From positions 2,480,001-2,544,000 of the forward strand of contig JBLDXI010000024.1 of the NCBI GenBank assembly GCA_047495785.1: 64,000 nt of DNA, in the 5' to 3' direction. Source of the stretch: Lepidodermella squamata. Taxonomy: Eukaryota > Animalia > Gastrotricha. The position numbers and the translations under genes were made by a program. Positions 35,925 to 61,030 of the stretch are shown here, piece after piece. The number at the start of each line of letters is the position of its first letter. Position 1 is the first letter of the stretch. The notes below the pieces were generated by a model, which had not been told where the DNA came from, did no database searches, and worked only from the letters and a program-made list of their open reading frames with translations.

Positions 35925-38252
35925 ATGAGAACATCAACATTCCTGCTATTAGCTGGTTTCTTTGCTAACGTTGGTCGTGGCCAGAAGCCGCTGAAGCTTC
36001 AAGTTCTTGCTTTGGTTCCATTCACTGGGGCTGAGCCGAGAGATGGCAAGCATTGCCGGGCGGTGTTCCAAATGGTGGCCGATCTAGCGAACAAGCGGAG
36101 TGACATTCTCCCTTTCTACCAAATCGAGCCTGTATTCGAGGACGATGGACCTGGAAGCAACCTAGCTCTGGCTAAATCTGTTAAATTTTCTCGAAGCTTC
36201 GACAGAAACCCAGCGGATACCTTCCAAGCTCCGATATCTTTGGGGCCAACCTACACCCCTGGATGTGTGAGTTACGGCAGGGCTTCTCGTTACCTGGAAA
36301 CAACAACTCTAGCTTTTGGCTGCCTCTCGCCGGTTCATTCCGGGAATCGAGTTACCTTCGCCAATTTCTACAGATCCCGCAGTTCAGGTGAGATCATCGC
36401 GATGGCCCGTGCGCACTTCATTAGAAACCAGGCTATCTGGTCGAAAATAGCTGTCTTCATCCACGCAACGAATTTCTACAACTTTCAAATCGCAATGCAG
36501 TTCTACGACATCAACAAAGTAACTAAATTCGATTTGTCCTTCTTCAACGCTTTCCCTGATGTCGATGACGTATCGATGGCTATGTTGAAAGACAGTGGGG
36601 CTCGAATAATATCTGGAGAATTCAGCGAACCAGGGCCGGCGCTAAAATTTCTGTGTATGACTCAAAAATACGGCATGACCGGGTCGAAATACGTGATTTT
36701 GCTGCCTACTCCAGTTCAACCTGTTATGGAACAGTTGCCACCTCTCCCCGCAGGTTGTACCATGGCGATGTTCCTAGCCCAGATGGAAATCACGTTCTTC
36801 ATCGGCGGAACTTCAAGCGCTCTGAAGAACCATGGGCCAAGTACGCTTCTCAACTTGAATGTTGACCAAGTTGAAGCTCTTGCGGATGAGAGAACCAACA
36901 GCTCGAGAGCCGGGGACTACGACCGGCGACATTTGTGCTACGATAATTTCCTCCAAGTCGTGCTCATTCTTGACAGAGCTGAGCGAAAACTGAATTCATT
37001 CAACATGAGCCTGAAAGATTACCGAGATAATAAAGGCGTAGTTCTGGACGCGGTGAATTCTAGTTACGGCGAGGTACAGTTCAACGGAATTCGGGTTGGA
37101 AAGGTAGCTTACTCGTCGCGTCTAGAACTTGACCAAGAGCCCCAGTACGTTCTCAGGTGGTCGAAAAAGTTGAAAACATTTGAAGTTTTCGCTGAAATCA
37201 ATCGAAAAACAAACTCTACCGACTTTGATTATCAATCTTACGTGTATAGTAGGATCAAGCCTATAACGTGGGACAATCCTTTAGGAATGGCTCCGAAAGA
37301 CTCCATAACACTAGTTTACACTTTCAATGAAGTTCCTCAGCCAGTTCTTATTGCAGTTTCAATAATTGGAGGGATGCTTTCTCTTGGCAATGCGATCTTA
37401 TTCGGCAGACGCTATATCAAGCATAGGTTCGAAGTTGGTGGTCAGTTGGAATACTACGGCGTCCTTTGTTTCTCCAACATTCTTTTGAACCTCGCTAGCA
37501 TTTCATTCACAATAACAAAGAAAAACGACACAGCAACCGCTATTTGCTGTACGAGGACTCTACTTCTTGTCGCCGGTCTCTCAATTTTACACGCTATTTA
37601 TTTCCGATGGCTTCGCAGCTACAAAGATCGCGTGATTTTCACGAAGCGGCGGGAGACAACTGTGAAGTCGACAACAAGCCGCTATCGTCGGAAAAGTTCG
37701 GTAATCAGCGAGACAGCCTGCACTTCGAAACAGCGACACGACAGTCACGCCCCGTCGATGGATATTCAGCTTAGCCCTGATTCGGCGGACAGCACTCCAT
37801 CAGCTAAGTGTTCACTCATTTTCGCTATCATTTTCGTCGCCATTAACGGAGCTGTAGTCGAGTTTTGGTTAGCTAAAGACACGCCGTACTACAAAGATAT
37901 CCGGTTTCCAACCGAGCAAATTCTTGATGAAATAAGTGATACTGTTTACGAGCCTGTCGAAGGTGCATGTCACTCGGGCGATGAGTTCATTTACGTGGCT
38001 GTACTAATTCCGCTGAATTTCCTTCTCCTCCTTATGTGTGCGTCCACAGCGTATACACTACGACGTTTTGATGATAAGCTAGCATTGAAGGCATTGAAGA
38101 TCGATGTCATCAAGCATATTAGCTTATTTGGAATGGCTGTTCTCGCTGTAGTATGCATTGCACATCCGGTCATTCAGGAAATACTGATTGCATTCGCTCT
38201 GCTAGTTTGCTCGGCATCTTCGACAGTGATTTTCTATTGGCCAAGTAGTTGA
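35925..38252 (+). CDS. Divergent class C GPCR (GABA-B-like), intronless paralog
   Basis: 775-aa ORF with PFTGAEPRDGKHC, GPTYTPGC, LKDSGARII, GDYDRRHLCYD and 7TM. Confidence 0.9.
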   Translation: MRTSTFLLLAGFFANVGRGQKPLKLQVLALVPFTGAEPRDGKHCRAVFQMVADLANKRSDILPFYQIEPVFEDDGPGSNLALAKSVKFSRSFDRNPADTFQAPISLGPTYTPGCVSYGRASRYLETTTLAFGCLSPVHSGNRVTFANFYRSRSSGEIIAMARAHFIRNQAIWSKIAVFIHATNFYNFQIAMQFYDINKVTKFDLSFFNAFPDVDDVSMAMLKDSGARIISGEFSEPGPALKFLCMTQKYGMTGSKYVILLPTPVQPVMEQLPPLPAGCTMAMFLAQMEITFFIGGTSSALKNHGPSTLLNLNVDQVEALADERTNSSRAGDYDRRHLCYDNFLQVVLILDRAERKLNSFNMSLKDYRDNKGVVLDAVNSSYGEVQFNGIRVGKVAYSSRLELDQEPQYVLRWSKKLKTFEVFAEINRKTNSTDFDYQSYVYSRIKPITWDNPLGMAPKDSITLVYTFNEVPQPVLIAVSIIGGMLSLGNAILFGRRYIKHRFEVGGQLEYYGVLCFSNILLNLASISFTITKKNDTATAICCTRTLLLVAGLSILHAIYFRWLRSYKDRVIFTKRRETTVKSTTSRYRRKSSVISETACTSKQRHDSHAPSMDIQLSPDSADSTPSAKCSLIFAIIFVAINGAVVEFWLAKDTPYYKDIRFPTEQILDEISDTVYEPVEGACHSGDEFIYVAVLIPLNFLLLLMCASTAYTLRRFDDKLALKALKIDVIKHISLFGMAVLAVVCIAHPVIQEILIAFALLVCSASSTVIFYWPSS

Positions 38253-38549: not shown

Positions 38550-40971
38550 TCAGACCCCGCGCAGTTTCGCGACGAAATTTGCGGTGAAATGGTGCGGATG
38601 AGTCTCCAGGTATTTGACGCTCGCAATGCGTAAAAGAAGCTTAAAATCCCGTGCAGTGAAGAGAATAACGTTGGCAACAGCGGAACAGATGAGAGCGAAT
38701 ACATAAATGCCACTTTGAACCACGGGGCTAGACGCTATCAGTAAAGCAATAAGCGTAACAAAGAAGATTGTCGATTGATTAAGAGTTGCTAGTCGGACGT
38801 AACGAAGATCCGGGGGCTGAGTCATTTTTCTCAACTCGAACGATAAGAACATGGCAATTGTGAGGATAATGAAATGAATAGAGGCCAGGGCCAGTTGCCA
38901 AGCAATGAGATAGTTTGACTCGCAGATTGTAGAAACTCTCTCCACTACTAAATCTGTGTCAGCGCTATACTTTCCAGTATTGGTAACGTGTGTCTCAGCC
39001 CTGAAGCTGCCAAAGCCGGACCAAAACGCGAATATGGCAACGTTCAATGCCAGAAAAGCTAACGTCGATACGAATATAAGATAGGACCTTCCTTCGCATG
39101 AGCCGATTGGTTGCTTCGTGGGATCGGGCGTGCGATGCCTTTGATTGGGCTCTAGAAAAGTAGTGTTGTAATAGTAGAGTCGTCTTATTGCTTTGTCTGT
39201 AGCTTGTCGGCTTAGCTCATTGCGCAATCGATATATCGTGGTGAGCCGACCAATCAGAAAGCCGTGAATCAATGAAAGGCCTATTATGCAGGTCAATGGC
39301 TGCAATACGCATAAGTAGGTAGAATTTTGTAGCGAATAAACAATTGAACAGATGGATAAAACGATTGCGCCTAACGATACTATAAACCGGTCTTTTACAC
39401 CAAACTTGGTGACTTCCTGGTCGGATCTGACGTAGAGCCACAGGATGGTCGTCTTTAGATTGAACAATCCTATTAGGACTAGGAAAACATAGGCCACAAT
39501 CGATACTTCGTGTGGTACATAGTCATCGAGCTTGGATTGCAGCCGGATATCTGCAGGCGGCTTCCCGTCTGCCGTTGTCCATCGAACTCTAGAGAGAAGT
39601 TTCCTTTCGAAATCAGAGAATCCGAACCCCGAGCTACCCTTTCGCCGTCTTACTTCAGCAAAGTTCTGTAGAGTGTCGTCTTTTGACCAATAAGCAACAT
39701 AGAGCGGTTCATCGTCGATTTCTAACCTCTGCGAATATTTCGTTGGACCGGAACGTAATCCAGAGAATTCGACCTCCTGAAGGCTAGATTTTATCGCTGC
39801 AACTACTTTCATGGGATTTTCGCTCCAATCACGAAGAGATAAGCTCGAATTTTGAAGTTTCCGATCTGCTTCGTTCAGAACTAGAAGCGCTTGGATCAGA
39901 GTGTCGTAGCAAGTTTCTCTTCGATCAAAATCTCCAGTTTTCGACCGATTCGTTACTTCATCAGCTTTGCGATGGAAAGTATCAAGGTCCCAGCCTAATA
40001 TACTAGTTGGTCCGTTGTTTTGAGGGACAACGTTAGATGGACCGATCCAGTATGAAATCGTCAGTTGGTGTTCCACAATCGACTTGTTACAGCCCCCAGT
40101 CAACGGCGGGAGGTTATTCAAGGAAACCTGGGCTAAAGTTAAAGCGATGAAAACGTATTTCGGCCCAGTAATCCCCACCCTGTGGGCAAAACAAAAAAAT
40201 TGAACAACTTTAGCGATCTCTGCGATCTCTAGCGAAATGATCCTCGCATCGCTGGCTTTCAGCGACAACACAGCATTTTCGTCTATTTCGGAAAAAGCGT
40301 TAAAATACACTAATTCAATCCCGGCTTTTGGAGCCTCACGATAGAATGCCAAGCCAGTCATTACGTTGAAGCTGTTAGCGGCATTGATGAAAAGGGCTAC
40401 CTTCTTCCACTGGCCAATACTCCTCACGAAATGCAGTTTCGCAATTGAGATCATCTCTCCACTTATCCGCGTTCGGTACATGTTAGGATATTCGAGCCTT
40501 TTCGCCGTAAATTGAGGCCCAAGGCAGAAAAATGTCAGGGCAACCATGTTTAAGTGATGAACCATTCGACCGTAAGATTGGCATCCTGGTGTTGACGTTG
40601 CGCCCAAAATCAATGTGGATGGGAAAACGGTCAGACTTTGACTATCTTCGAAACTCCTGGCGAAATTGATCGATTTCTCGGGAGCTAGAGCGCTGTTCCC
40701 AGCATCGTCTTTGTAATCAATTTCAACGTTATAGTCGGTTAAAATATCATTCCGTTCGTTGACTAGTTTTACAACCATCTCCATCACTGCCTTGCCTACA
40801 AGAAAATCAGGTATATTTAGGAACACATTTAGCAAACAAATTACACTGCATCCCGTTTCTCGGTTCGTTCTGCGTGAACGGAACTAAAGCCAGCATTCTT
40901 AATGTGTAGTTCTTCGCATCCGAATGAATGGTAAGAGCCGACAAAATCAAGAGAGTGAGTGAACAATTCAT
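38550..40971 (-). CDS. Divergent class C GPCR (GABA-B-like); 2 exons (intron 40796-40844)
   Basis: Upstream exon MNCSLTLLILSALTIHSDAKNYTLRMLALVPFTQNEPRNGMQ splices through a 49-nt GT-AG intron to CKAVMEM. GDFDRRETCYD and 7TM are present. Confidence 0.88.
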
Positions 40972-43557: not shown

Positions 43558-45852
43558 TCATTTCCTAGTTTCTACTAGTTTCAATGTCTTGAGACGGTAC
43601 GGCCTTCTCACTCTATTCGACCTAGGTTGAATCCGTTTTCGCTTCAAACTCGGCATCATCCAAGCTGCACTAAGAATACTCGCCGTGATGAGAACACTGA
43701 ACGAGTCCAAAATCTGTTGAATAATAGGATGGCTCTCAGTTGCGAGATGAATCATCACGGCTGCTGGCAGTAACGTGGCAGAACACCCAGCAGCAACTGT
43801 AGCCGACCGGAATTCACGAAATTTCGTACCAAAGCCTTTGATTCGCCCGAGATCGTAAGCGACAAAACAAGCCAATAGAAGCAGCGCCATGTGAATAGCT
43901 CCGATAATTATAGGAATTGCATAATTTGCGACGTTAAATGAATTGCTTGGATAGCAGTTAACAGCCCATTCCTCGAACTGAGTGTCCTGGATTTCATCAG
44001 ATAGTTTGGAAACTAATTTTTCATAGCAAGTGAAGCCGCTTATTGAGATCCAAACAATACTCAAAATCCCGCAAATCGCTGACGAAATTGAAGCCCAGAG
44101 AACATTGGCTACGTCCAACCACCTCCAAGTCGTGCTAGTGACTGTTATTCTGAAAGCAACTTCTTTCTTTTCGAGATTGTTCTCGTCGTCATGGGGCTTT
44201 TGGCCCTGTAGAGCAAGGTATAGGGGTAGAAGTCTGAAACAAACTACCCCAATCGCTAAAAGACCTCCAATTAGGATGAAAAATATCGGAATTTTGAAAT
44301 GCTCAGATTTTTCAATCGTCATCAATCCGGATGAGATTGCTAAAATGAAACACCCTGTCAAGCTGAGTAATTTCGATAGCCAAAAATTTCGGATAAATTT
44401 TCGATCTCTCAAGTAATTTGCGATGAAGACGAGTTGACTTAGACATATAATTGCAACTAAAACTCGAATGATTACAATTACGCTGATGGGTATGCTTAGC
44501 AAGGTCTTAATTAACAAAGGACCATCTTTGGGCGGACTTCCTAACGGCCAATCGATAGCCCGAATCGCTGTAAATTCGTAGTTATCGATTTCGCTAATTT
44601 CATCCGATAAATTGGTCGTTTTTTGAGATGTTAATAGGGCAGTTAGGGATATGCCCTGTTGCGGTCTATAGTAAGAAATTCCCTGAGTTCTGCCTTGTAA
44701 TAGACTATTTTTATCATACCATTTCTCGCCAAGACTAACGCCGTAGTATCTGAGATTCAAAACCGATTCGTTAGCGACTGAAGCAACAAGACTGGGGAAC
44801 TTTTCATAGTCCCTCAGCGTCAAGTTAAACCTTGTTTTCAGTCGATTTTCTGTGTCATTAAGGGCGAGAATTACGGCTAAAGCACTGTCATAGGCTACCT
44901 GAAGACCTGCCCCAATTTCGCCCCCAACTGATTTTATCACATCGGCATATTCAAAGTTTGAAAGGCCTAGTTCGCTAGTCTGGGTGTAATTTTCAGGATT
45001 AGCCCCGCCAAAGTACAAAGTCTGCACCATTTGCTCGATAAAGTCAGTCTTACTGCAGTTTGCTAATGAAGCATCTAAGCTGAAAGCCCCAGTTTGGATG
45101 AGAAAAACGAATTTTGGCCCTCTGAGGCCGACTTTAAACGCCTCGCATAGGAAAGGATTTGCGAGGGCGGGCTGAGACGTGCTGAAAACAATGACCCTTA
45201 ACCCACTTTCTCGCAATGAAATTAGGTCATCGTGGCGAATTTCTGAGACCAGGCTGAACCAGGGCACGGAGAATCCTGATAGCAATGCCTGGCTATGAAG
45301 GATGAAAGCTGACTGGTAGTCGTTAACATTGGCTGAATTTGTCAACAGGGCGAATTTCGACCATTTCCCTACATCCCTCATGTAGCGAAGTAATGCAATG
45401 ACTGGAGATCGTAGCGTCAAGTAGGAAATGTATAGATTAGGGTATAAAGCGTGGTTCTCGAATAAAATCCCAGCGCAAGCACTGGCGACCGCGATTGAAT
45501 GGACCTGAGTTAGTATCGGGCCAATTGCCTTGCATCCACTTGAAAAACCAGGACCGAGAATGATAGGCGATTGAATTTCGCTGCTTGTTTTGTTTCGTTT
45601 GAAGTCGATTAGAATTCGAGCTGCTGCGTTGCCTAAAGCTTCGTTTTCTGCGACATTTTCAATCCAGTAGTCGGGTAGAATGTCGCGCCTGGCATTAGCG
45701 CTGTCGATCGCGAGGTCTGAAGCTAATCGAAGTGCTCGTCTGTTCGGCGAATCAAGGTGGACTATGTTCAGCAGACGTAGTGTAAACGACTTCGTCGCAT
45801 AATTTGAAGGTAAGGATTCACTCAAAAGCCAGAATAAAAGTGCTAGCTTCAT
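43558..45852 (-). CDS. More distant class C GPCR (GABA-B-like), intronless
   Basis: 764-aa ORF with ANARRDILPDY, ILGPGFSSGC, YPNLY, GLRGPKFVF and 7TM. It lacks the GDYDRR motif of the other four. Confidence 0.87.
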   Translation of the reverse strand: MKLALLFWLLSESLPSNYATKSFTLRLLNIVHLDSPNRRALRLASDLAIDSANARRDILPDYWIENVAENEALGNAAARILIDFKRNKTSSEIQSPIILGPGFSSGCKAIGPILTQVHSIAVASACAGILFENHALYPNLYISYLTLRSPVIALLRYMRDVGKWSKFALLTNSANVNDYQSAFILHSQALLSGFSVPWFSLVSEIRHDDLISLRESGLRVIVFSTSQPALANPFLCEAFKVGLRGPKFVFLIQTGAFSLDASLANCSKTDFIEQMVQTLYFGGANPENYTQTSELGLSNFEYADVIKSVGGEIGAGLQVAYDSALAVILALNDTENRLKTRFNLTLRDYEKFPSLVASVANESVLNLRYYGVSLGEKWYDKNSLLQGRTQGISYYRPQQGISLTALLTSQKTTNLSDEISEIDNYEFTAIRAIDWPLGSPPKDGPLLIKTLLSIPISVIVIIRVLVAIICLSQLVFIANYLRDRKFIRNFWLSKLLSLTGCFILAISSGLMTIEKSEHFKIPIFFILIGGLLAIGVVCFRLLPLYLALQGQKPHDDENNLEKKEVAFRITVTSTTWRWLDVANVLWASISSAICGILSIVWISISGFTCYEKLVSKLSDEIQDTQFEEWAVNCYPSNSFNVANYAIPIIIGAIHMALLLLACFVAYDLGRIKGFGTKFREFRSATVAAGCSATLLPAAVMIHLATESHPIIQQILDSFSVLITASILSAAWMMPSLKRKRIQPRSNRVRRPYRLKTLKLVETRK

Positions 45853-46351: not shown

Positions 46352-49300
46352 ATGGATGCAATAAAATCAGCACTCATCTTCTGCATTTTCATCATTTCAA
46401 AAGGTAACCATATACTCTAACCTCTCGAGATTATTGCCAAAGTAATTTTATCTTTCATGAAAGCTGGAGCTGATTGCGGACTTGGCTGCAAAAATGATGG
46501 AATATGCGTTGCTAGTATGCGAAGATGAAAGCTGAACTAACGTTCTAAAATTCGGTTATTTTTAAATTTAAGATCAGTCCTGCAGTTGCCCCAACTCATG
46601 GACCGGCGATTGCACCAGAGGTAAGTTTCTTATGTTCTGCTATTATCCATATTAAAAATGCTGATGTAGTGGACAGCTTCGTTTACCCTGGAAATGAATT
46701 TTCGAGACCTCTGATCGAATGGACTGCGCGTAAGGATAAAGATGCGAACTGGTTGTGATTCATCATTCACAATTTATTCTAGAAGAATTGGACAACCAAT
46801 TGAACCCAGATCCGGACGAAATACCAGATGGCTTTGTCGAGCAAAGTTCGTCAAAATGAACATGGTTTATAGTAATTTAATTGATAATTTGTTCCAGCCC
46901 AAGATCCTACGAGTTGTTGCCCATGTGGTTCTTTTATTCAAAACAATCGCTGCTATTTTGTGGCCACCCAAGATTCGCTAGAGTAAAATTAATCGGTCCT
47001 GAACTGAAATCCAGTTCAAATTTTATTTTTAGCTCATCTTCAATACAAACTTGCTCGAAACTTGGCGGAACCTTGGCTACTTTTGAACAAAACAATGTTA
47101 CCTCGTTCCTATCCTGGCTGGCCTTGAATGACGATTACGAAGCCTCAGACTGTTTGATAGTCGGAATTCATCAATCATCTAAAGACTCGGCCTGGTATTG
47201 GAATGTTGATCCTCCGATCAAAGTGACTTCCTACCTGGCCCCTTTGGATTCATCTGAAAGAACATGGCCCTGTGTCGTCCGGGTATAGGAAGGTTCCAAT
47301 GCCTGAACTACTGAAATTTTTCATATTTTCTAGGATAAATCTGCGAACATGATCGCCATGACTGACGATGCAAGTCAAGCGATTTGCATGATAACTGATC
47401 CATGTAAAAGAGCCTGCAAATCAACTGATCTGTCAACCAATTCTCAGGAAGGTTTCAAGCTGAACGATCGATGCACATCATTCAGCAATCAGCCAGTTGA
47501 GCAGCGCGAAGCTAGCCAGACGTGTCGATACCAAGGCGGATTTCTGTCCACATATCGTTACGAATATGACGCTGGCTTATTTTACGAATCTTTACCATGG
47601 AAAGATTCTGTTGTGACTATTCAAACTGGGCTATGGACAGGCCTGAACCACCTTAAAAGTTCGAAATTTTGTCTATAAATTTCCAAAAATAATAGAAATA
47701 TACTTTTAAGGTGGCTACAAGTGGAATTCGACAAATATGCCTCTTGAATATCCTTTTCATACGAACTGGAATGCCTTTGAAGGAGCTCCAAGGGACCCTG
47801 ATACGAACCTGTGCACGGCTATTGGAGAGAACGGATGGATTGATTCGAAATGTGACTCGACGTTTCTGTATGGCTGTGAATCTGGGTTGCAAAGTTACAC
47901 GTATTCGCCAGCCAATCTTACATGTCCCCAGGTTCGATGTAAAATTTGCCAAAACATAATTGTAATAAGGCTTTTTGACAGAATGGTTGTTGCCCTTGTG
48001 ATTGGATTCCCTGGATCTCCGCGAATGGAACCGAGTTTTGTTTCAAATTTTTCGAGATCTCAAAAACTTGGTCCGAATCTCAATTCTCATGCCACGCAGC
48101 TGGTTCGTACCTTGTCACACCGGACTTCGATGCGAAAGCTCAATTCCTTCTCAATTTACCACAATTCATCTCGAATTCGTATTGGATATCTCTCTCCCAG
48201 AGTAAAATTGTTGATGAATGCTGAATGATGATTATTAAAATCTAATCTATCGCAGATTCCCGAAAAGTTTGGAGGCGGCCCCAGGGTTCATACTTCACTG
48301 AAAATTCGATAAGCGCGAGCCAATCAACGAATATGATCGAATGGCTTGGGGGAGTTCTTGGAAAATCAGACGGAAAGATTCATTTTATTCAAGACCTCAA
48401 CTATGAGGTGATTCAACGCGGAAGTTATCAGTTCAATGTCTCGAAGCCAGTAATGACTAACCCTTACATTTGCGAGATGATGGTGTCTACTTCAAACAAT
48501 GGCCAGTGTCTGAGCTGCAAGAGAAGCGTCTCGAACAGCTTACTATTACCGAATCCTATTCGAGTTTCCCCCGACAAATGCATTTGGCTTTTCAGTGAGG
48601 CTGGATTTAAGGCTGAGAATGATCAATTTTGCGCGCTGAATAGAATGGAACCTGTCAATCTACAGGAATCTTACGAAAATCAGCTGGTTCAGAGTGTTCT
48701 AAAATCAGTGAATATATCGATTTGGATAGATCTAGTCAATTCCGCCGTTAAAAGTGAGTTTCGATTCCTTTCAAGTTTTCAGAGTGACTAAATATTATTT
48801 TCAAGCTGATTACGTTTGGGACGGCGAGCCGTCAAATTTCACGCGATTTTCCTGTCCTAGTAACAATTCATGGCATTACCCATGCAGCTATCTCAATTCA
48901 TCAGGTTCAATCAACTGTGACAATTGTGCAACGAAGCGTCACTTCACCTGTACCCTACCTTCGGCAAGAACCTGTTCCGACCTATGCCTGGTAGGGTTCG
49001 ACCCGGTATCAGGGTCTTGTATTAAAGTGGTGCCGACCCAATTCGTGACTCCAACTCTAGCTCGGCAGTTCTGCTTGAATGAACACGAAACCTACAACCT
49101 TGCCACCTTAACAACAGTAGATAAAATCGCTGAACTTGAAATCCTGTTGAAATCGAGAAATGTTGAACCCGGTGCCAAGTTTTGGATAGGCCACTTCAAT
49201 TTATCGTTCTGGCAAACAGATTCGGGTGAAGAGATAGCTGATTTCAGCCGATGGTCGAATGTCCCTCAAGTCGGGTCAAATTTCGGTCTAGCAACCTGGA

Positions 49301-52300
49301 ACGGCTCAAATCTGATCCTAAGTTCGGTCTCAAGTGGTATCGCCGGGGTTTTCTGTGAACGACCCAGCCCATGTTTGAGATGCCGTCATGGTTGGACATT
49401 TTTCAACGGAAAATGTTACCTGGTCAATGAATTTGAACCCGAAACTTCTTATCACCGCCAACTGCAAGGCTATTGTGACTATTTTGGGCAATCAAGTCTA
49501 ATCACCTTGGAAACTGCTATCGAACAAAGTTTTGTCAGCTTTCTTGCCCGAAATCAAACAATTCCCCTCAATTTATACCGGAGAGAGACATTTTCAGCCC
49601 TTTCGATATCAGGGCCTTTTGAGTGGGGCTATGGAGCCACCTTAAACCAGCAGCGAAACACATTTTGGGCCTCTGACCAACCAAATGACGGCGATGGCTC
49701 TCAGGTTATCGTAGCAATGTACAGTGACTCAACCTGGTTCGACACCTGGCCCGGCTACGACGGTTTCACAGCTGTTGTATGCGAAAGCCCGGCATTTGTG
49801 ACCACCCTGCAGTGTCCGAACAAAAAATCCTCGACTGGTTTTGAAAATTTAGTCGATTCGATCTACCTTAATAGCTCGACCTTAACTGCTTCATCGTCCG
49901 ACCCGGCTTACCCGGTCGCAAATCTACTGACTGGCTCGTTTTGGGCCCCGGCTACAACGGCTAATTCTTGGCTAAATATTGACCTGAGACCGAATGGAAA
50001 ATTCATTAGAGCAATTTCAACGAAAGGTTCAAGTTCAGGATTTGTGACGAACTACAAGCTCAGCTTCACCTCCACATCGATTTCGTCCTCTTTCTCTTAT
50101 TTCATGACACCGAAACTAGCGTCTCGTTTCGGGAAATCGGCTCCAATATTGCTTGCTGGTAATGCCATCGGAAATTTGTGGGCCTCGCAAAATTTTTACA
50201 ATCGCCTTATCGCTTTCCAACTTAAAATGGAAATCGCTTCATTCAATGCCGTGCCTTATGTTCAAATCAAAATTGTCGGCGGTAATTTGACCTCAAATCT
50301 CTCGGCTGCTGATTTCAGCGAATGTTGGATTGAGATTTTTGACGGATATAGCGGGGTAGAATACCCATTTTGGGTCAACACCGCCTCGGCTGATTCATCC
50401 TTATCATCCGATCATCGAGCTATAGCAGCTTTGACTCAATTTAAAGATGGAGAAGTGCCGCCGGATAGTTTGAATCGACCCCTCGGCTGGACACCGGGCA
50501 TTGTCGACAGCGCGAATTGGTGGCGAGTTGATTTTGCAACGCTGAGATTGATAACCGGCTTAGTCATGGCTGGCGATAGCTTGTCGAATTTCATCACTAG
50601 TTACTACGTCACATGGTCGCATACTGGCTATGATTACGCGTTCTCCTACTATCAAAACTCTGATGGCAGCAATAAGGTTGACCTGATTTGAATTAAATGA
50701 AATTGGCATTAGTGCGCGCACGTGATTTATGAGTGTCTAATTTGATTGGCTGGCGCTAAAAATGCGCGCACGCTGATTGGCCAGCATTTTCTTTTGCGCG
50801 CGCACACGTTTCACGTCCTATTAACCGCGTCCTACTTACGAACTTCAGTCAGTCAAGTATGCAAACCATTCAAGAAAATTTAAATAATTTATTTGCTCGG
50901 TTTTTCTTCGAGGAACGTCAATTTCTTTAATATTAATAGCCTTTTAAATTATTAATTATGTTTTGTTAGCTTTTTGCCGGTCCTTACGACGCGACTCTGC
51001 CTACACAGCAAACATTCTGCCCGCCTATGAAAGCAAAAGCCGTCAAAATATTGCCCAACACTCACTCTTCAAGCCCGGGTCTCGTCGTCTCTCTGTTCGG
51101 CTGCACTGCGCGCCGGCGGCGTTGTGAGTCTTCAAGACTATTTGATCATAAAACATTAATGGTTTTCCCGCTAGGTATTGATTGTTGCGACGATGCAGGC
51201 ATTTGTGCTTGCCATTGCCCCGCTGGTTGGACAGGAACGACATGTGAAATGCCGATTTCTGAAATATACAACAAAATTACTGAAAAGCCAGGTTACATTC
51301 CGAAATAAGAGAAAAATGGAAATGAAATATTTTAAGGAGGATTTTTATTTAATTGTTTATAGTTTGCTCGGAAGAACTTCTTCAGTATTTGCCGGAATGG
51401 GGAGGTTCAATGACAGCGTCTTCAAATGCAGACCAAGCCTATCTCGCTGCCGGGTTCTCTGCCGGGACATTTTGGTCACCCTCATTAACCGACCTCGCCC
51501 CTTACCTACAAATCAATTTCAACCGCGAAGTTCATATTTCGGCCATCAAAATTGCTGGCTCATCAGGGGCCTGGGTGTCTCAATACGCAATTTCGTTCAG
51601 AACCCGATTCGCGTTTTACTACCCGATCCTTACCAATCAATCGAACCCTGCCAGCTCGGAATTTTCATCAAATGGAGCTAGGGATGACGATGAAAATAAC
51701 TTTGCGACTAATTACTTTTGCCCAACTATCAAAACTGATTCGATCAAGTTGAAGCCATTTGCTTTCGTCGGATCTCCGCCGCGTATCAGGCTGATAATCG
51801 CAGGGTGTCTAACTCACACAGGTTGCGGATCATGCTGCACGAGTCAGGGCGGCTGTCAGTGCAAATGCGCGATTGGCTACGGCGGGGTAGATTGTTCGAA
51901 ATGGATTCTAGCCCCGATTGATTGCGAAGATGTCGCAATGCGACCGCCGGCTAAAAGTGGAATCTATACCTTATCCCCGCCTCTGGCCAACCCCTTTCCA
52001 GCTTATTGTGAGATGGACCTATTAGGAGGCGGCTGGACTGTTTTCCTTAATCGCCTTAGTAGCGATTTAATCGATTTCCACCGAACTTGGGTTGAATATC
52101 GGAACGGCTTCGGAAATCTTTCTTCAGCCTTCTGGCTTGGCAATGAGCCGATTTACAAGATGACAAAACAAATATTCCACACTTATAACTTGGCGGTATT
52201 TCTCGAAGCCAATGATAGTCAGCATTCAGTTGCGCTGTTTGAGAACTTCAATTTGGAGAACGAAGCGTCGCGTTACATGTTGAAAATTGCCAAGCCGTTC

Positions 52301-55300
52301 TTCAGTAATTCTGGGGCGAGTTTGATGTCGCATGTTGGATTCAGGTTTTACACGAAAGATCGAGATACATCGGCGAACTGTTCGAAGGTTTATACGGGTG
52401 GATGGTGGTACTTCACCAATGCTGAATGCTACCGTGCGAAATTAACAGGGTCAGTGAAAATTATTGAAAATCGAAAATTTCAAAATTTAATTCAATTTTA
52501 ATTTTGAAATTTGATTTTTGATAAAATTGGAAAATTCAAAATTTATTTCAATTTCAAATTTCAAATTTCACAAATTTCACAAATTAAAATAAAAAAATGT
52601 GGGTTTAAAAAATTTAAAGTTCACAATTTAAGTTGTGTTTCTGTTGCTCGCTGTAGAATGCAACTTCTGAATTCTTCGACCAAGGGAATCATATCCCGAG
52701 ATTTTCGAGATTTCCAACCACTATCTATCGCTAAAATGATGCTGAGAAGATCGAATCCGACAACTGAGCTACCTTTGAAACGCCCTTCAAATGCCTTCCC
52801 AGTTGATTGCCAAGATATTTTGAATTCAAATCCATCTGCTTCGAATGGAATTTATCAAATTTATCCAGTTGGAACTGTCAATTCTATCGATGTTTACTGC
52901 GATATGGCAGCCTTAGGTGGGGGCTGGATTGTGATTCAGCGACGAATTTTCGAAAATCCCAATGAAGACTTCAACAAAACTTGGGCAGAATACGAAAATG
53001 GCTTTGGGTCGATTAGCGGATCATTCTATCTTGGAAATTCAAAAATCTTTGACCTAACTTCCTCAGCAAGTGGGAGCGTTACTTATCAATTAGCTGTCAA
53101 ACTTGAAAGACAAAGTGGGGAGAAAATCGCAAATATTTACTCGAAATTTCGACTGGGAAATCGCCAAAATTACTCAATTGAAATATCAGGGTTTCAGAAC
53201 TTTTCAAATATCGCTGGAGATGGCTTATCTGAATTGAACGGATCAGCTTTCGAAACCTGGGATAAAGGTGGCAATTGCGCAAAAATTCGATCAGGCGGCT
53301 GGTGGTTCCGCTCTGGATCTAACTCCTGCTCGAATTCAAACTTGAACGGTGACTTTGAGGCTACTACGGCGACGAATGGCATGTTATGGCCGGGGATAAC
53401 AGGAAATTATCAAGCTTACCGATCTGTGACAATGATGATAAAGCCTTCGAGTATGAAGCTTTCTTAAAATACAATAAATAAGGGACATTTCTATTCCATA
53501 GGTCTAGTCAAGCCTATAGATTGCAGCCAGATATTGGAAACGTGTCCCGGCAGCATTTCAGTGGCATATTGGATTTTCCCTTTTGGTACTCGGCCTATTC
53601 AAACCTACTGCGATATGACAAGCAACATCGGAAGCCTGGGAAAAGGCTGGACGGTAAGGTCAGGTTTCTTCATTCTTCGAGAGACACTTAATCAGGAAAT
53701 TTTAGACTATTGTTCGAAGCAATAGTAGCTTCAGAAAAACTTGGTTAGATTTCGAAACAGGTTTCTCGGACCTTCTTATCGATAATCAGGGAAATTTGTG
53801 GCTTGGAAATTTGAATCTTCATACAATCACCAAGTACTCGAGTTATTCCCTGCTAATTCGAGTCAAAGATCTTGCCAATACGCTGAAATCAGTTGTGTAC
53901 TCGAATTTCGCTGTAGCTGGTTCAAATCGGAAATATTTGATCACTGTATCAAACTTTACGGATATCGGAGCCGGAGATTTGTTGAGTGGAGTTGACCAGC
54001 AACCATTTTCAGCTTTCGATCAACCATCTTTCGAGTGTTACTTACTGAAAAATCTTCAAGGTGGTTGGTGGTTTGATCAAAACTGCACAAATTCGAGTCC
54101 CATGAGCGGTATTCCAAGTCTATATCTATCTATTGAAATGCTAATCAAGCGAACAAGTAATAAATTGAAAAAATTCTGTGAAGCCAATTATTTAATTTGA
54201 CTTTTAGACACTCTGTCCTTTGATAAATTTACGGGGCAATCCATCGATTCTACTGAACTTTTATCATCACCTATTCGGTTGATTGAGAACAAGTGTAGAG
54301 AAGGCTATTCGAAAAGTTCCGGCGATTCCCTCCAACTAAGCGACTTGAATTTTGTCGGAAAATGGCTTTGGGAACCTTTGGAATGTGAAGGTAAGGACTT
54401 CATCATAACTCATTTCATTTTTCACGGAAACTTTTCCAGCCTCTTGTTACAGTATTGGCGATTGTGCAAATAATGGAACCTGTTTGAAGCCTAATCAGTG
54501 CGTTTGCCCGTCTGGTTGGGCTGGATCGAATTGTTCGATTCCTAGCTGTCTCATGATCGGAAACTGTCAGAATGCAGGCACATGCAATGGCCCTAATAAC
54601 TGCTCATGTACAGCTGACTGGATCGGAACAAACTGCTCCGAACCTAACTGCAACGGCATTGGTGGTTGTAACAACAACGGGACCTGTATCTCTCCAAACC
54701 ATTGCCTTTGCCCTCAAGGCTGGTCAGGGTCCAATTGCTCGATAGGTGAATTTTATAAGTACCTCAACATTGGATGATCTGTCATTTTTTAATTATTTTT
54801 TCAGCTAATTGTACAACCATTGGGGATTGCCAAAATGGGGGATTTTGTGCGAAGCCGGATTCCTGTGAATGTTCAGACGGCTGGTTTGGTCTCAACTGCC
54901 AGCTTGCGAATTGTTCTGGTATCGGAACTTGCCTTAATGGCGGCAACTGTACGGCACCAAATACTTGTGAATGCCCAGAAGGTTGGTTAGGTCCTAATTG
55001 TGGCGAAGCTGATTGTTCAAACATCGGAAATTGCCAAAATGGAGGTAGTTGTATCGGCCCATCGTCCTGCCAATGCCCGAGTCACTCAACCGGAACGAAT
55101 TGTTCGATTTTGATTGAAACTACTACTACTTCTACAACTGATACTACTACTACCACTACTACAACTACTACTGCTGCTGCTACTACTACTGAGCCTACAA
55201 CCTTCCCTGTAACTTCAACCATAGGTTACGGGACTACTTTGGCTTCAGCTAATACTACTGAATCGACGCTTGGAACTCCACCTAATTTTAGCCTCGAATT

Positions 55301-58300
55301 AAGCACTCAGATTGCTTCAAGTGGAGCGACTGCTGCTCACATTGTTCCGACTACCCCGCCGGCCTCTAGTTCCATCAAGAGGAATCCTGTTCTAACAATG
55401 AAAGAGGCCATTGCTTTATCCGATCTGAACTTCAGCGATTCAATCGATGCTATCAATTCAATGGTCGCCTCGACATCAAAGCAAATTCTAATCAAACCAG
55501 CTACATCCTCAGATTTGATTAAATCGATGGTAAGCTTTTCTGATATGATATCAGAATTTTAGGTGGATAGGTAATTTTTCAGGTCGAATTCATGGCAGAG
55601 CTTAGCAAGATATCATATCGAGCCCTTCAACTTACAAATGACTATTCTGAAGCTCAGGCGAAAAATATCACTGAAGGTACTTTCAACCGTCCTAATTTTA
55701 AAATTATATCCTAATTTCTTTAGGATACCTATCTGCTGCGGATGAAGTAATGGCTATTGCATGCAATGGAACGAGCTTCGAATCTGCTACAGTTGGAATT
55801 GGAATCCCGAAGAATTGCGTCAAACCTGAACCTCTTGACGAGCTGGAGAGTGTAGCCCTAAAGCTCACCCTTTCACAGTCCGATGCTTTGAACTCAAATT
55901 TAACCGCCATTGTCGAGAATTTGTCGAATCTCCTACGTCCTAAGCTTTCCATTGGCCAAAGTTTCGAGTTCAATGGGAAATTCATGTCAGCTTCGATAAG
56001 GTCCATTAGCTTGAAAGCAGTTCCCGGGCTTCGTATTCAGACGAATCTTGTCGGGGTTGAGTTTCCGATGATTCAAGGTCCGTTATTTCTGATAACTGCC
56101 CAACAAAGGTCATCAATGAGTTCTGAATCTAAGGTTACCGTAATTCTGGTCGGATTTATTGCTAATGTCCTCCAGACCACTAATCCTTTCAACTTGCCCA
56201 CGATATCGGTAAAGATTCTGAATGAAAATGGAACCAAATTAATCCTGAACCCAATCAAACCAATTCGATTGATTGGAAGGCCTGATATGAGAAAAGCTCG
56301 CTCGTTGTCATCGGAGGTTATCGAAGCTCAGTGTGACATTAGCACCGTGAAATGTGACCTTGAAACAAATGCTGATCGCTTGGCTCTGTTGACTACGTTT
56401 CAAATTTTGCCAAAATACGGCGATTTTCTGCTGAACTTTCCAAGAAGTGATCTGGCTTACGAGGTTTACCTATCTTTCCGGATAGTTCCAACTCCGCGGA
56501 ATTTCAGCTGGAAGTTTCGGGTAGAAAAGTCCAACTTCTCTGCGATATCTATGAATCTGACCCATGAAAATCCGATTTCGAGTTACGAGAATTCTACTGG
56601 AAAGTTTCGCCTGCTATTCCAACGATCGATTTTCGAAAAGCTCTCAAAATCGATTTTGAAACTCTACGTGGTCACGAAACCTGTCTTGACCCAATTTTCG
56701 CCAATCGACGACCTTCCAAGCTCAGCTTGTCGACCAATCAGTTGCTATGGATTTCATGTGAAAATCAACCAAGCTGTAATACCTGATGATCTTCGGCGTA
56801 AACGAGAGGTTGACCTATCATCAGATGCTTCGAAAGAAGGCTTCGAGCTGGAACCTAACTCTTCAGAATCGGAGATAGCCTTCAAATCGAAATATTTCGG
56901 CGATTTCGGAATGGACCTAGTCATTTTGCCGAATACTATCGAATTTTCTTATGTTTTCGCAAATTTCACATCATTGGTCGCCAATAATTATGCAGTTCTT
57001 GCTGCTCAAGTAACGGCCGTCGCTTTCTTCATCATTGCAGTTGGATTCACGATAAAGTTCGATAAAGCTGATCTGAAAGCGGTAATTTCAAGCTGTATTC
57101 CGATGTCCACGCCATTATTTTTTATTTTTAGTGGGCTTTTCTACCACTGAAAGGGAATCTAGCGAGCCACACAGCGAAGTACCTGGTTTCAATTACTCAT
57201 TATGGGGTCAAGAAATATCATCTCAAGCCAACAATTTGTTTGAGAATAGTTGGAGATACTCACGAGACGAAATGGTTGGTACTTGATGACGGTGAACGGA
57301 AGGTTGGAAGAATTAATTTCCAATTATTTTTGTAAAGCTGATTTCTTTTAAGAATTTCGATGGAAAAAGACCGGCAAATTTTGCTGTTACGAGCTTGCTG
57401 AATTTAGGCCGGCTTGAGAGTTCAGAAATTACCTTGATCGAACCTGCGAATCAAGATGGGATGAAAGATCGATTTGAGATGGTTCTTGATAGAATTATCA
57501 TCCTAGATACGCAAACTGGCGATAAGTAAGGAATACAGAATTTCGAATAACCCAAGCCTTACTCATTTATTAAAATTTCAGGTTCACTTTTTTAGGAAAT
57601 CGACGTCTCAAAACTGGGGATTCCGTCACCTTGTCACTTGCTAAGGAGGATGAGGTTAAAGGGTTCCGATATTTGTTGATCAGCCACTCTCGGGGTGGCA
57701 TTTACGAATCTCATCCATGGCTATCTATCGCCAGTCGACCCTTGCCTAGCAACTGGACCCGAACAGAGCGTTTAGCTTGTGTTGTATCCGCCTTATATCT
57801 CGCTATGTTAGTAAACGCAATGTTCTACGGCCTCGAATCGAATTCACCAAGAGTTGGAGTGAAAGTTGGGACATTCTTCCGAATATCTTGGTTCACTCTA
57901 TGGACAAGTGTCATCGGTTCAGCAATCATCATTCCGCCGACTGCGATTATGGCTTTGATTTTCAAAAGGGTGAAACGACGATCGGCTGAGCTCAGCGAAT
58001 GGGAAACTGCTTTGAAGCTGAACTTGGAAAAGTGCCAAAAAGCAGATCCTGAAGCTAAGAAGAAACCATTCCAACTACCTTGGCCTTGCGTTTTCATCGG
58101 ATGGTTTCGTAAGTTCCTTTCTAAACTACTAAATACTAAATATTTCATTACTATGGAATTTAGTCGTCGGTTTTTGTATCACGGTCTCTTGCGTATTCAT
58201 AACACTGTACAGCTTATCATGGGGGAAGGAGAAGTCTCTTCAGTGGCTCACTGGAATCGTCATACACGTCATTCAAGACATCATCCTAATTCAATCAATC

Positions 58301-60523
58301 AAAGTTGGCTTCCTATCTCTGTTCAGCTCCGGTCTTCTCAAACTACCAGATGATGGCTTGAATGTTGGGAAGCAAGTGTTTTCTGAGAGCAGCGATAAAC
58401 CTCGGACTGAACTGTTCCTGCGATGCCGAGGGATGTTCTTAGGGCTGTTTCACCACTTTCTTCTGGTTACAGCTTTCGCTTTGGTCATCAACACAATTCA
58501 AAATCCTTACGCCAATCTCCAAGTGAAAGCCCTTCAACCAATTCTTAAAGTCAAAGGCGTGAAGATGTTTGACGATGTGGTAAGGGTTCAGTATCTAATA
58601 TCATGCTACACCTCTTCCATTGAATCCCCCGCTATAGATATTAGATCATGGACAGATATTTGACTGGCTCAACTCTACTTTGCTACCAAACTTAACAGAT
58701 GGCAATCAACTCGCTTACGGGGGCGCTTTCAGAAGTAGGCACCGATGAAGATGTTACTTTTAGTTTTTAGTTTGGATTTCGGTCTATTTTTAGGGCGGAA
58801 CTTTTACAAAATATGGAATCACGAGGTAGCTCTATTGGGCCCTATCCGACTTCGACAACAGCGACTACGAAATGGTTTGTAAAACTTCATCATCATAGCC
58901 AATCTATCTCAACTTTAATTTTAATAATTCATAGCAACCTGTCCAGTCCTCGAATCGGTCAATAAAAAAGCCATTCCAAAAAATCTAATGAACATATTGG
59001 CTTCTGAGACGAAGTGCCACGCTGCAAGACAAGGAAGTAACCAAGCCTTGGAAAGAGGATCCTATCAATCGAGCTGGTCTGCCCCCAGCTCGAAAGATTT
59101 CACCTTTCTGAAGCAAAACCTCTCAATCGAAGAGGCGCCTTGGGTCTACAGAGGAGCCGAGGGAATTCCATACATGGGGCAAGAATCTGACTATTCCACC
59201 GGCGGTTACTACATCGATTTACCATTCAAGCTGTCAGATGCAAGAGCGGTGGTTCAAAGTCTAAAGAAGTCACGTTGGATCGATGAGATGACGTTGGCCG
59301 TTTTTATCGATTTGGTAGTGTACAACGCTCAGACAAATTTATTCGTCACGGTGAAGGTGGCTTTCGAGGCCTTAGAAACCGGTGGCATGACGTATCACAC
59401 GAGAATCAGTCCTTTGAATATGTACGTATATTCAGGCGCTAGTTCCTTGCCAGCTTTTGTAATACAAGGGCTGTGGATCGTGGTCCTCATGGCTACGATT
59501 GGTAAATTGGCTTACAAAATCAAAAAGCAAGGCCTCTCGAACTTCAAGAACGATGGTTGGAACTTGCTTGAAGTCTGTCAGGTTGTCATCTCACTGTTAA
59601 TTGTCGCTCTCTTCGCTGCTAGACTTGAGATCATCATAAAAACCATTACGAAATATCAAAATGACAAGTCCAGTTTCCTGAACTTGGATCTTTTAGCCAA
59701 TTGGGAGGAATTGATGGCCAATCTGTATGGCATCGCGTTTTTTCTCACTATGATGCTATTTTTCCGGCATTTAACCTCCAACAAACATTGGGCTATCGTT
59801 GTCGGGACTCTGTCAAAAGGGAAACAAGATTTGATCTCATTCATGGGCATTTTTCTTACTTTGACTCTGATATTTTCCACGGTCGGGTATTTGGCGATTG
59901 GGTCGAGGTTGGTGGAATTTAAATCTTTCACAGCTTCAGTACTGACACTGCTTCAAAACACGCTGGGAGTTTCGAGGGAATTATTGGGCCTTGGAGCTAC
60001 TTCTCGTTTTGTTTTGATTTTCAGCCTAGGCTACTCATCCCTTGTCATGTTTTTGTCAGTTCAAATGTTCATGACCATCATTGCGGTAACATATGGGTTG
60101 GTGGGCAGTGACATTGAGACATATACAGAGTGGGATGAAGAGCTAGCAAACTACATGTCTGAAGAGTGGTCTGAATTCAAGAAAGGATTCAACCGGACCG
60201 AATCAAAGGTTCATGAAGAAATAGATCGTAAAGAATCGGGTGACACATTCCATCGGCTGGATAAAGTCGTGGATCGATTGGTCAACTCTGAAACTAAGGA
60301 ATGTGCGAAGAACGAGCGATTTGTCAAGGCGATGGAGGAACAGGTTGTTGTCAAGCCGAAAGTAGGCTCGAAAGATGGAAATTTCTTCGGCCAAACGTAT
60401 GCGTGGACGACACAGCGAATAACAAATGCCGTTCTCGTCAAAAAGTCCATATACAGAACCCATCAAAAACTGGAACTACGCAAATCAGTCTATTCGGATG
60501 TTCTGTCTCCTTATCAAGCCTGA
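46352..60523 (+). CDS. Giant polycystin-1-like (PKD1L/REJ-type) receptor-channel, ~30 exons, roughly 4,000 aa: SP-EGF-6xCTL-2xF5/8C-EGF-F5/8C-EGF-3xFReD-6xEGF-Thr-rich stalk-GAIN/GPS-like-TM-PLAT-TMs-TOP-channel
   Basis: The reading frame was followed by eye across consecutive GT-AG introns with no stop. Polycystin hallmarks include PNTIEF before TM1, PLAT, HPWLSI..RP..SNWTRTERL, LLGPIRLRQQR and SRWIDEMTLAVF. FReD motifs include YCEMD..GGGWT, FWLGNE and GGWW. Confidence 0.85.
55118..55190 (+). repeat. (ACT)n-rich coding microsatellite encoding a poly-Thr mucin-like stalk
   Basis: actactactact... encodes ETTTTSTTDTTTTTTTTTTAAATTT. Confidence 0.8.
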
Positions 60524-61030
60524 AGGCTGAAATTTATAGTCCGTAATTTTAACACTGGACATAATTTGCGGAAATGAACATAGCTTGAATGCTTTTGTCA
60601 TTATTAGTCCATTAATCATTTATTAAACTTGGAATTTCTCGGAAAGGGAAGGTCACATGTATGCGAAGTTTGGCTTTTGTGTAATGAATAAGTTATAAGA
60701 CTTACGGGCTTTTTTTTTAGCAGTGGTTCTTTGGTTCTTTACTGGCTTTGACCCGGAAATGTTCCTTATTGACTTTCTTGCAACAGCTTTCACTCGATCG
60801 AAGATCTAACAGCTACTAAACGTTTCTAGAGGTGTTAAATTATGGCCTTCTACGCCGTAAAAATGCGCTCCCTCACACGGTTATAACAATGGAACAAAAT
60901 TGACGGAAACGTTAAATTTTCACACCTTTTCTTTGCGTTGAAGGGTTTTCTAGGAGTGCTGGCTTCGATAGGAAAACCAGCAGAATCTAACAAATTTCAT
61001 CGCTTCATAATAGACCAACATTTTTTTGCT

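Follow-up and report, generated by a model that had tools for sequence, protein, structure and literature searches.

The window analysed here, a stretch of 64,000 nucleotides of contig JBLDXI010000024.1 (assembly GCA_047495785.1, positions 2,480,001 to 2,544,000) of the gastrotrich Lepidodermella squamata, is compact eukaryotic DNA (~43% G+C), in which a chain of long plus-strand open reading frames (ORFs) extends from 46.3 to 60.5 kb. Rebuilt independently from the DNA, this region (46352-60523, + strand) forms a chain of 28 exons, running from an ATG at 46352 to a stop codon at 60521-60523 with a coding sequence of 12,210 nt (4,069 codons) in a single open frame. Both the coordinates and the one continuous spliced frame were in exact agreement with an earlier reading of this DNA made from its letters (hereafter the sequence-only reading). 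Taken jointly with the whole explanation developed below, the region probably represents one intact gene for a PKD1L2/PKD1L3-like receptor subunit with a lectin-type head.

The splicing of this gene is an in-silico model, for which frame-keeping GT-AG candidates were listed, a weight matrix was derived from the clear introns, all in-frame paths were searched, and the ambiguous places were read by eye. All 27 introns of the resulting chain have GT-AG borders, 23 of them measuring 47-60 nt and the remaining four 71, 162, 207 and 293 nt, and no stop occurs in any exon or split codon. Between the ATG at 46352 and exon 6, only eight in-frame GT-AG paths were found, which were near-identical and all used exon 1. 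The 293-nt intron (50677-50969), with GC-rich gcgcgc stretches, and the 207-nt intron (52450-52656), with a low-complexity 'caaatttca' repeat, are unlike the others, and each could be an inserted element.

The membrane side of the predicted protein comprises the following features (TM, transmembrane segment; HMM, hidden Markov model), the Pfam scans here and below having been made on single open frames or exons:

57132-57650, + strand: PLAT domain (exons 22-23 and the first part of 24); family PLAT HMM and colinear tblastn
57772-58489, + strand: TM2-TM6, five hydrophobic segments (exons 24 and 25); hydropathy and phmmer matches to 56-59 PKD1-like kin
58490-59440, + strand: TOP/polycystin domain (from the end of exon 25 to the start of 28); Pfam Polycystin_dom 1.2e-22
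59441-60094, + strand: PKD_channel, TM7-TM11 and pore helix; Pfam PKD_channel 8.8e-22
60095-60523, + strand: cytoplasmic tail and stop codon, with ATTAAA at 60622; translation and hydropathy

As in the PKD1 family, a TOP/polycystin domain and a PKD_channel domain were both recognised by Pfam, in the ORF at 58928-60520, and exon 28 matched polycystin-2 (4e-31), PKD2L1 (3e-29), PKD1L3 (1e-22) and PC-1 (4e-6) in the PDB. The Pfam PLAT profile gave no match, even at E 10, on the three exon pieces, nor on P0002, one of the nearest relatives of the protein. A family PLAT HMM was made from 49 PKD1-like kin that did not include the window's own lineage; with this HMM, exons 22 and 23 fell consecutively on profile positions 4-44 and 53-96, residues 543-656 of P0002 scored 42 bits, and another near relative, P0007, also scored ~42 bits. 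The PLAT domain thus recognised lies directly after TM1, as is characteristic of the PKD1 family. By hydropathy, exons 2-20 contain no hydrophobic segment and the subsequent exons exactly 11, all downstream of 56992 (one in exon 21, two in exon 24, three in exon 25 and five in exon 28), which corresponds to the 11-TM arrangement of the PKD1 family, namely TM1, a group of five, and a six-helix channel-like half, with TM6 counted in both. The protein belongs to the PKD1L2/PKD1L3-type branch of the TRPP family and has a complete PKD1-type 11-TM module; the complete PLAT/TOP/channel polycystin module described by the sequence-only reading was thereby borne out, by Pfam for the TOP and channel domains, by the family HMM for PLAT, and by the count of 11 TMs. 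The pore filter (59960-59974) reads LGV, compared with LGD in polycystin-2, and would suit a PKD1-type subunit better than the pore-forming PKD2 type.

Between the extracellular stalk and the membrane lie the following features (AF2, AlphaFold2; pLDDT, predicted local distance difference test):

55301-56928, + strand: GAIN-fold region (end of exon 19 through exon 21); AF2 model and structure matches
56794-56805, + strand: RRKR furin-type motif in a GAIN insert; alignment, with loop pLDDT below 50 at model residues 351-369
56875-56901, + strand: GPS position, IAFKSKYFG against C-x-C-x-H-L-T-x-F-G of kin; alignment with P0014, P0015, P0053, P0099, P0108 and P0124
56929-57048, + strand: post-GPS stalk (PNTIEFSYVF) and TM1; alignment of 18 kin, hydropathy 2.33

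Exon 21 (452 aa) gave no Pfam match even at E 10, and a PDB sequence search with it returned only noise. An AF2 model of 55726-57081, which used an 18-sequence alignment, reached a pLDDT of 70.8, and its top Foldseek matches were the GAIN domains of BAI2 and BAI3 (E ~3e-4); VIA-align of model residues 46-401 gave Z scores of 12.4 to BAI2, 12.2 to CD97, 10.4 to latrophilin, and 10.3 to CELSR1 and BAI3. The model thus predicts that exon 21 is a GAIN fold. At the GPS position, both Cys residues and the HLT tripeptide are replaced, and no exon matched the Pfam GPS family. The nearest relatives P0002 (RRKRR) and P0007 (RRKKR) likewise carry a basic insert at the same place and have also lost the GPS. 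The GAIN domain is accordingly predicted to be non-cleaving, its self-cleavage motif being apparently dead; SpREJ10 also has no GPS, yet is accepted in the PKD1 family (PMC1934368). The post-GPS stalk is conserved, with P, N, I and V invariant across the 18 kin (consensus PNTIxFxxVF).

No REJ domain was matched by Pfam on any exon even at E 10, the GAIN fold occupying the space from stalk to TM1, while the kin P0014, P0015, P0053, P0064 and P0124, taken as a positive comparison, scored 1e-38 to 1e-98; the REJ domain of ~450-600 aa that characterises the REJ subfamily is therefore not found. The single-exon scans also gave no Pfam match to a PKD repeat, and the earlier remark that neither PKD repeats nor a clear long REJ module could be recognised thus agreed with Pfam, which finds neither. 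PKD1L3 is also without a REJ domain (PMC1934368).

The ectodomain is predicted to be composed, in this order, of a signal peptide, an EGF-like module, six C-type-lectin-like (CTL) domains, three discoidin (F5/8 type C) domains, three fibrinogen-related domains (FReDs), six EGF repeats and a Thr-rich stalk:

46352-46403, + strand: exon 1, with the start codon and a hydrophobic N-terminus resembling a signal peptide (MDAIKSALIFCIFIISK); translation
46464-46845, + strand: exons 2-4, EGF-like Cys pattern across exons 2 and 3, then a linker; motif only, no Pfam match
46898-47393, + strand: CTL1 (exons 5-6 and the first part of 7); Pfam Lectin_C below cut-off (E 0.013), and motif
47466-47880, + strand: CTL2 (end of exon 7 and exon 8); motif only, no database support
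47982-48500, + strand: CTL3 (exon 9 and first half of exon 10); ESM Atlas features for exon 10, motif at the junction
48567-48960, + strand: CTL4 (end of exon 10 and start of 11); Pfam Lectin_C E 0.1, exon 10 Atlas features
48961-49365, + strand: CTL5 (exon 11); ESM Atlas features
49366-49797, + strand: CTL6 (exon 11); Pfam Lectin_C 6.6e-7 (30.5 bits, cut-off 22.6)
49807-50283, + strand: discoidin 1; Pfam F5_F8_type_C 1.9e-12, two stretches in exon 11
50314-51104, + strand: discoidin 2, interrupted by the 293-nt intron; second Pfam F5_F8_type_C stretch and exon junction
51111-51290, + strand: RRRR motif (51111-51122) and EGF-like module (51183-51245) in exon 12; sequence reading
51365-51808, + strand: discoidin 3 (exon 13); Pfam F5_F8_type_C 6e-7
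51917-52750, + strand: FReD1 (exon 13 and start of 14), interrupted by the 207-nt intron; Pfam Fibrinogen_C 1.5e-39
52799-53449, + strand: FReD2 (exon 14); Pfam Fibrinogen_C 3e-40
53502-54156, + strand: FReD3 (exons 15 and 16); Pfam Fibrinogen_C 2.1e-17
54208-54390, + strand: exon 17, a ~60-aa module without a Pfam match, in frame and stop-free; translation
54440-55103, + strand: six tenascin/teneurin-type EGF repeats (exons 18 and 19); Pfam EGF_2, EGF_TEN, hEGF and EGF (ORF 54409-55559)
55119-55300, + strand: Thr/Ser-rich mucin-like stalk, with a Thr run at 55119-55190; translation, read mapping marking 55115-55196 as repeat

The discoidins and FReDs, three of each, are firmly identified. The F5_F8_type_C scores, 47.9 bits for the two stretches in exon 11 and 30.1 bits in exon 13, lie above the cut-off of 28.2; Pfam recognised Lectin_C and two F5_F8_type_C stretches in the ORF at 48736-50688, F5_F8_type_C and Fibrinogen_C in that at 51353-52498, and Fibrinogen_C in each of those at 52508-53464 and 53706-54197. 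FReD1 matched ficolin-3 and ficolin-1 best in the PDB (~1e-32), keeping the Asp pair of the Ca site as a ficolin-like D-R-D and the Tyr after the first Cys, while the best match of FReD2 was tachylectin-5A (1.4e-31) and FReD3 matched FGL1 and ficolin-2 (~7e-12). All three have the full fold of the ficolins, tachylectin-5A and the FREPs; whereas those are secreted oligomeric lectins, the FReDs here are internal modules of an 11-TM membrane protein, and the protein does not have the make-up of a FReD lectin, that is, a secreted collagen-like or coiled-coil oligomer with a C-terminal FReD. Exons 18 and 19 carry the EGF repeats as two triplets with 50% identity, probably the outcome of an internal exon duplication. 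The RRRR motif between discoidin 2 and the EGF-like module of exon 12 is another possible furin-type site, in this case within the head.

The CTL domains were recognised from Cys and WIGL-type motifs across exons 5-11. In the ESM Atlas, exon 10 (CTL3/4) obtained a feature search score of 0.94 and CTL5 one of 0.95 with 174 shared features, 28 of the 30 nearest clusters being Lectin_C (LY75, MRC1) in either case; a PDB sequence search with CTL5 returned the mannose receptor alone (E 0.52). No significant mutual similarity among the six CTLs was found by an iterated HMM search started from CTL6, a MAFFT profile of the lectin-like pieces was not meaningful, an AF2 model of 48808-49800 made without an alignment was unusable (pLDDT 35), and a homologue search with the 623-aa exon 11 gave no match. 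Of the six CTLs counted by the sequence-only reading, CTL6 was thus confirmed by Pfam, while CTL1 and CTL4 remain weak matches, CTL5 and exon 10 are suggested by language-model features only, and CTL2 by its motif only.

To place the gene among its relatives, the channel exon was scored against 1.84 billion representative proteins, which yielded 2,861 matches, none closer than 38-44% identity, and its nearest five relatives were ENA metagenome fragments. The C-terminal half of the gene (55855-60313) is colinear by tblastn with one continuous protein, P0002, which is 38% identical and encoded on the ENA MEGAHIT contig ERZ27333047 k141_63249. The heads of the closest relatives P0002 and P0007 are unreadable because the metagenome contigs end just upstream; ~50 nt upstream of P0002 and on the same strand lies an ORF (contig 1-1445) with an EGF module, a Thr/Ser stalk and a Sushi-like module. 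This ORF, in which the Thr/Ser stalk is long, also has a ~230-aa domain resembling LamG or pentraxin, and the Met called as the start of P0002 probably lies within the protein. Among the best 150 of the 2,861 channel relatives, no FReD was found by local phmmer with the three FReD exons of the window, queries that do detect the FReDs of amphioxus as a positive control. The more distant full-length kin are ordinary PKD1-like/REJ proteins, their heads combining F5/8C, CTL, PAN and fn3 in some, EGF_CA with PKD repeats in others, and WSC with PKD repeats in still others.

Among named full-length proteins, those closest in the channel half are spiralian PKD1-like 2 proteins (Lingula anatina XP_013386761.2, here P0052, P0073, and Owenia fusiformis P0021), which share a short lectin- or adhesion-type head (CTL, CUB/fn3 or PAN), the lack of REJ, and PLAT, TOP and channel, and differ in having no FReD, no discoidin, much smaller heads, and a PLAT domain recognised by Pfam. 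In Lingula P0073 (XP_013384714.1), residues 2405-2452 form a C-terminal Death domain (Pfam 8.9e-6), which would link a polycystin-type receptor to death-domain signalling. The sea urchin proteins SpREJ1 and SpREJ3 are also PKD1-family members with lectin-type heads (CTL, EGF, SUEL), in a family that has expanded to 10 genes (PMC1934368); unlike the gene described here, the sea urchin REJ proteins are defined by a ~600-aa REJ domain, and none has a FReD or a discoidin. The vertebrate PKD1L3/PKD2L1 and PC-1/PC-2 complexes (PDB 7D7E, 6A70) offer the same 11-TM, GAIN, PLAT and TOP arrangement with a six-helix channel-like half, whereas there the HL/T self-cleavage site is kept and the heads consist of LRR, WSC, CTL and PKD repeats (PC-1) or of a single CTL (PKD1L3).

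FReDs on such a protein are not without precedent. A survey of long proteins sharing words with the channel part of amphioxus PKDREJ retrieved a 'PKD1L3' of Branchiostoma lanceolatum (P0162, CAH1271105.1/A0A8K0F1Z3), in which Pfam recognises two F5/8C domains, Fibrinogen_C (6e-55), EGF_CA and Lectin_C, followed on the membrane side by GPS, PLAT, Polycystin_dom and PKD_channel, with no REJ; three more B. lanceolatum models (P0165, P0166 and P0167) are alike. These models thus carry the same domain types on one chain, with a GAIN-sized region, PLAT, TOP and channel and without REJ, but they have one FReD instead of three and one CTL instead of six in another domain order, an intact GPS, a length of 2,000-2,300 aa as opposed to 4,069, and a channel that is ~25% identical, and they are predicted models for which the literature searches turned up no study. 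F5/8C and CTL heads also occur on amphioxus PKDREJ (P0014/P0151). A second survey among long proteins, started from the FReD of P0162, again found the combination only in Branchiostoma. The amphioxus models P0168-P0172 (Branchiostoma belcheri or lanceolatum) have Fibrinogen_C on receptor tyrosine kinases and receptor tyrosine phosphatases, and FReD heads on signalling receptors seem common in the amphioxus lineage.

The sequence-only reading had not recognised the architecture from described proteins and had named its being already common in databases as a reason to abandon the idea. The former is not supported as stated, the Branchiostoma models already carrying the same domain types; as to the latter, the combination is in databases but rare, and both surveys saw it only in Branchiostoma. 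Literature searches that paired polycystin or PKD1L proteins with fibrinogen, FReD or amphioxus turned up no account of a FReD-bearing polycystin, and the paper on the L. squamata genome (PMC11660948) is silent on both polycystins and fibrinogen domains. The FReD-headed PKD1-like architecture is therefore rare but not unprecedented, being present in databases and, as far as the literature searches reach, undescribed.

In the tree, the window sequence and the ENA fragments grouped together (100/100), and this clade joined the CTL-headed Lingula 'PKD1-like 2', a second Lingula protein and an Owenia protein at 87/96, which is not strong support. The FReD-bearing amphioxus proteins were placed with Pecten PKD1L2, apart from the window clade, on a backbone that was not resolved. 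A joint clade of the two FReD-bearing groups was not rejected by the approximately unbiased test (p 0.64), and the tree constrained to contain it exceeded the quick free tree by 8.8 log units. On these sequence comparisons, an independent gain of FReD heads in the gastrotrich and in amphioxus would be the simpler, though tentative, reading.

The next gene downstream starts at ~61211 on the + strand and runs off the window at 64000, with a discoidin followed by at least three Fibrinogen_C domains. Its discoidin-FReD-FReD-FReD core, which the two genes share, is 27-40% identical to exons 13-16, and discoidin 3 is 27% identical to the neighbour's first domain; the 28-exon gene differs in adding, N-terminally, six lectin-like domains and two discoidins. 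This comparison shows it to be a divergent member of a tandem family. Directly upstream of the 28-exon gene, at 20363-45852, lies a tandem cluster of five intronless genes for class C (taste/glutamate-type) G-protein-coupled receptors of ~760-800 aa, each with ANF_receptor and 7tm_3 by Pfam:

20363-22705, - strand: class C G-protein-coupled receptor ORF
24636-27038, - strand: class C G-protein-coupled receptor ORF
35925-38252, + strand: class C G-protein-coupled receptor ORF
38550-40835, - strand: class C G-protein-coupled receptor ORF
43558-45852, - strand: class C G-protein-coupled receptor ORF

As for the function of the 28-exon gene, our preferred reading is that its product would be a sensory receptor subunit with a multivalent lectin head modulating a TRPP complex. 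Judged by the PC-1/PC-2 and PKD1L3/PKD2L1 structures (PDB 6A70, 7D7E), the protein would not be a channel alone and would take one of four places beside three PKD2-like subunits. We tentatively favour, without regarding it as probable, a mechanism in which the head would bind an extracellular glycan-bearing ligand, whether environmental, conspecific or microbial, and change gating via the stalk, the TOP domain and the membrane core. Binding of such a ligand would alter gating as it does in SpREJ1, a lectin-headed PKD1 protein that binds fucose sulfate polymer, a sulfated fucan, and triggers Ca2+ entry (PMC1934368). With self-cleavage apparently lost, separation of head and core would need an outside protease, for which a cut at RRKR would be the presumptive route. 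The 'glycan or microbe sensor' proposed by the sequence-only reading was, as stated, pure inference: the sites of FReD2 and FReD3 are degenerate, the precedent for a lectin-headed glycan sensor is SpREJ1, and the CTL of PC-1 acts on partner glycans. A microbe-sensing role has no specific support.

Several observations weigh against this preferred reading. Only one of the six lectin-like domains, CTL6, passed the Pfam cut-off. In FReD2, the Ca loop is wholly deleted and the acetyl-pocket residues of tachylectin-5A are changed; at the places of R186, D198, D200, Y210, H220 and Y236 of tachylectin-5A, which we take to be the Asp pair of its Ca2+ site and its acetyl-group pocket, FReD2 has E, G, the deleted loop, R, S and A, respectively. 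The numbering of these residues was checked against the 1JC9 alignment. FReD3 is likewise degenerate, reading DQP where DQD is expected. Since both thus have no canonical Ca-site or acetyl-pocket residues, the ficolin manner of sugar binding may be missing from at least two of the three FReDs, and it is not likely from their sequences that all three are canonical acetyl-sugar binders. No gene for a PKD2-like partner was seen in the 64-kb window, no search aimed at one having been made. As for the gene model, the donor of exon 12 is ambiguous (51175 or 51292, both in frame), and the placement of the small 5' exons comes down to splice scores. A search of RNA runs for the 46352-60523 stretch returned one public run only, with no joints in its mapped contigs, which was judged genomic because the contigs run colinearly through the introns, and which probably is the source from which the assembly itself was made.

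The main rival, which we consider unlikely, shares the same gene model and differs only in the role of the head, which it takes as a built-in regulator binding glycans on the TOP domains of partner PKD2-like subunits or of neighbouring complexes and thereby turning the channel on or keeping it primed, external ligands at most competing. It has a precedent in the PC-1 CTL, which is necessary and sufficient for PC-1/PC-2 activation and relies on the glycan at N375 in the TOP domain of PC-2 (PMC7728438); the full TOP domain is kept in the present gene, and the length and flexibility of the Thr stalk would allow the head to bend back to the membrane. A large and divergent tandem family is, however, more typical of receptors for varied outside ligands, and the neighbouring heads are only 27-40% identical. 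An improbable alternative is that of a receptor for gamete or conspecific recognition of the REJ type, serving sperm-egg coat contact or mate sensing instead of an environmental or immune role. SpREJ1 and SpREJ3 in sperm (PMC1934368) and C. elegans LOV-1/PKD-2 in male sensory cilia (PMC11968823) stand for the classic functions of PKD1-like proteins in invertebrates. Reproductive proteins, moreover, often form fast-evolving families. A family of intact sperm receptors nevertheless fits poorly with L. squamata, which we take to reproduce mostly by parthenogenesis.

It is very improbable that the gene is an unexpressed or decaying copy, that is, a young pseudogene which has acquired no stops yet. 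The search of RNA runs found no RNA run with this stretch, and the lectin-like domains as well as FReD2 and FReD3 are degenerate at canonical ligand sites, but 12.2 kb of coding sequence is open over 28 exons with every splice site intact, and since the identity to the neighbour gene is only 27-40%, the frame has presumably been kept open over a long divergence. The single-gene reading itself rests on the sequence, and it is scarcely credible that two genes, one for a secreted protein of many lectin domains and another of PKD1-like type, were merged in silico. Although no RNA evidence links the two halves, there is no in-frame stop anywhere, and the exon gaps from FReD3 through the EGF repeats and stalk to GAIN are all intron-sized (47-59 nt) with good GT-AG sites, too short to hold a terminator, a promoter or a further signal peptide. 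A gene made of the downstream half would lack a signal peptide and would begin within an extracellular region, and the true intergenic gap, to the next gene, measures ~700 nt and holds poly(A)-like signals. The relative P0002, continuous over the whole part colinear with 55855-60313 and preceded on its strand by the ORF with an EGF module and a stalk, also favours one gene.

Polycystin-1-like proteins are medically important and poorly understood, both in the ligands that their large outer parts bind and in the route from these to the channel. What is new here, as predicted from the gene model, is a multi-FReD lectin head and a non-cleaving GAIN domain on a PKD1L2/PKD1L3-like subunit, the receptor family itself being known; the value of the finding is limited in that the combination of FReDs with a PKD1-like architecture is already in public databases. 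FReDs, which are best known from soluble immune lectins, are thus placed on PKD1-like receptors in at least two distant lineages, the gastrotrich and amphioxus. A further suggestion, quite unlikely as it stands, is that the gastrotrich family consists of diversified 'ionotropic lectin receptors', in which each head would be specific for a glycan pattern of its own, from microbes, food or conspecifics, and would gate a TRPP channel directly, so that ciliated sensory cells would register recognition as an ion current with no need of soluble lectin cascades; a furin-type cut would then replace GAIN self-cleavage as the priming step, and the gene described here would have the broadest or most multivalent head. 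A tandem family with almost wholly lectin-type outer parts, and with a protease motif in the stead of the self-cleavage site, would in any case provide a natural set of variants for questions on how such heads act on TRPP channels.

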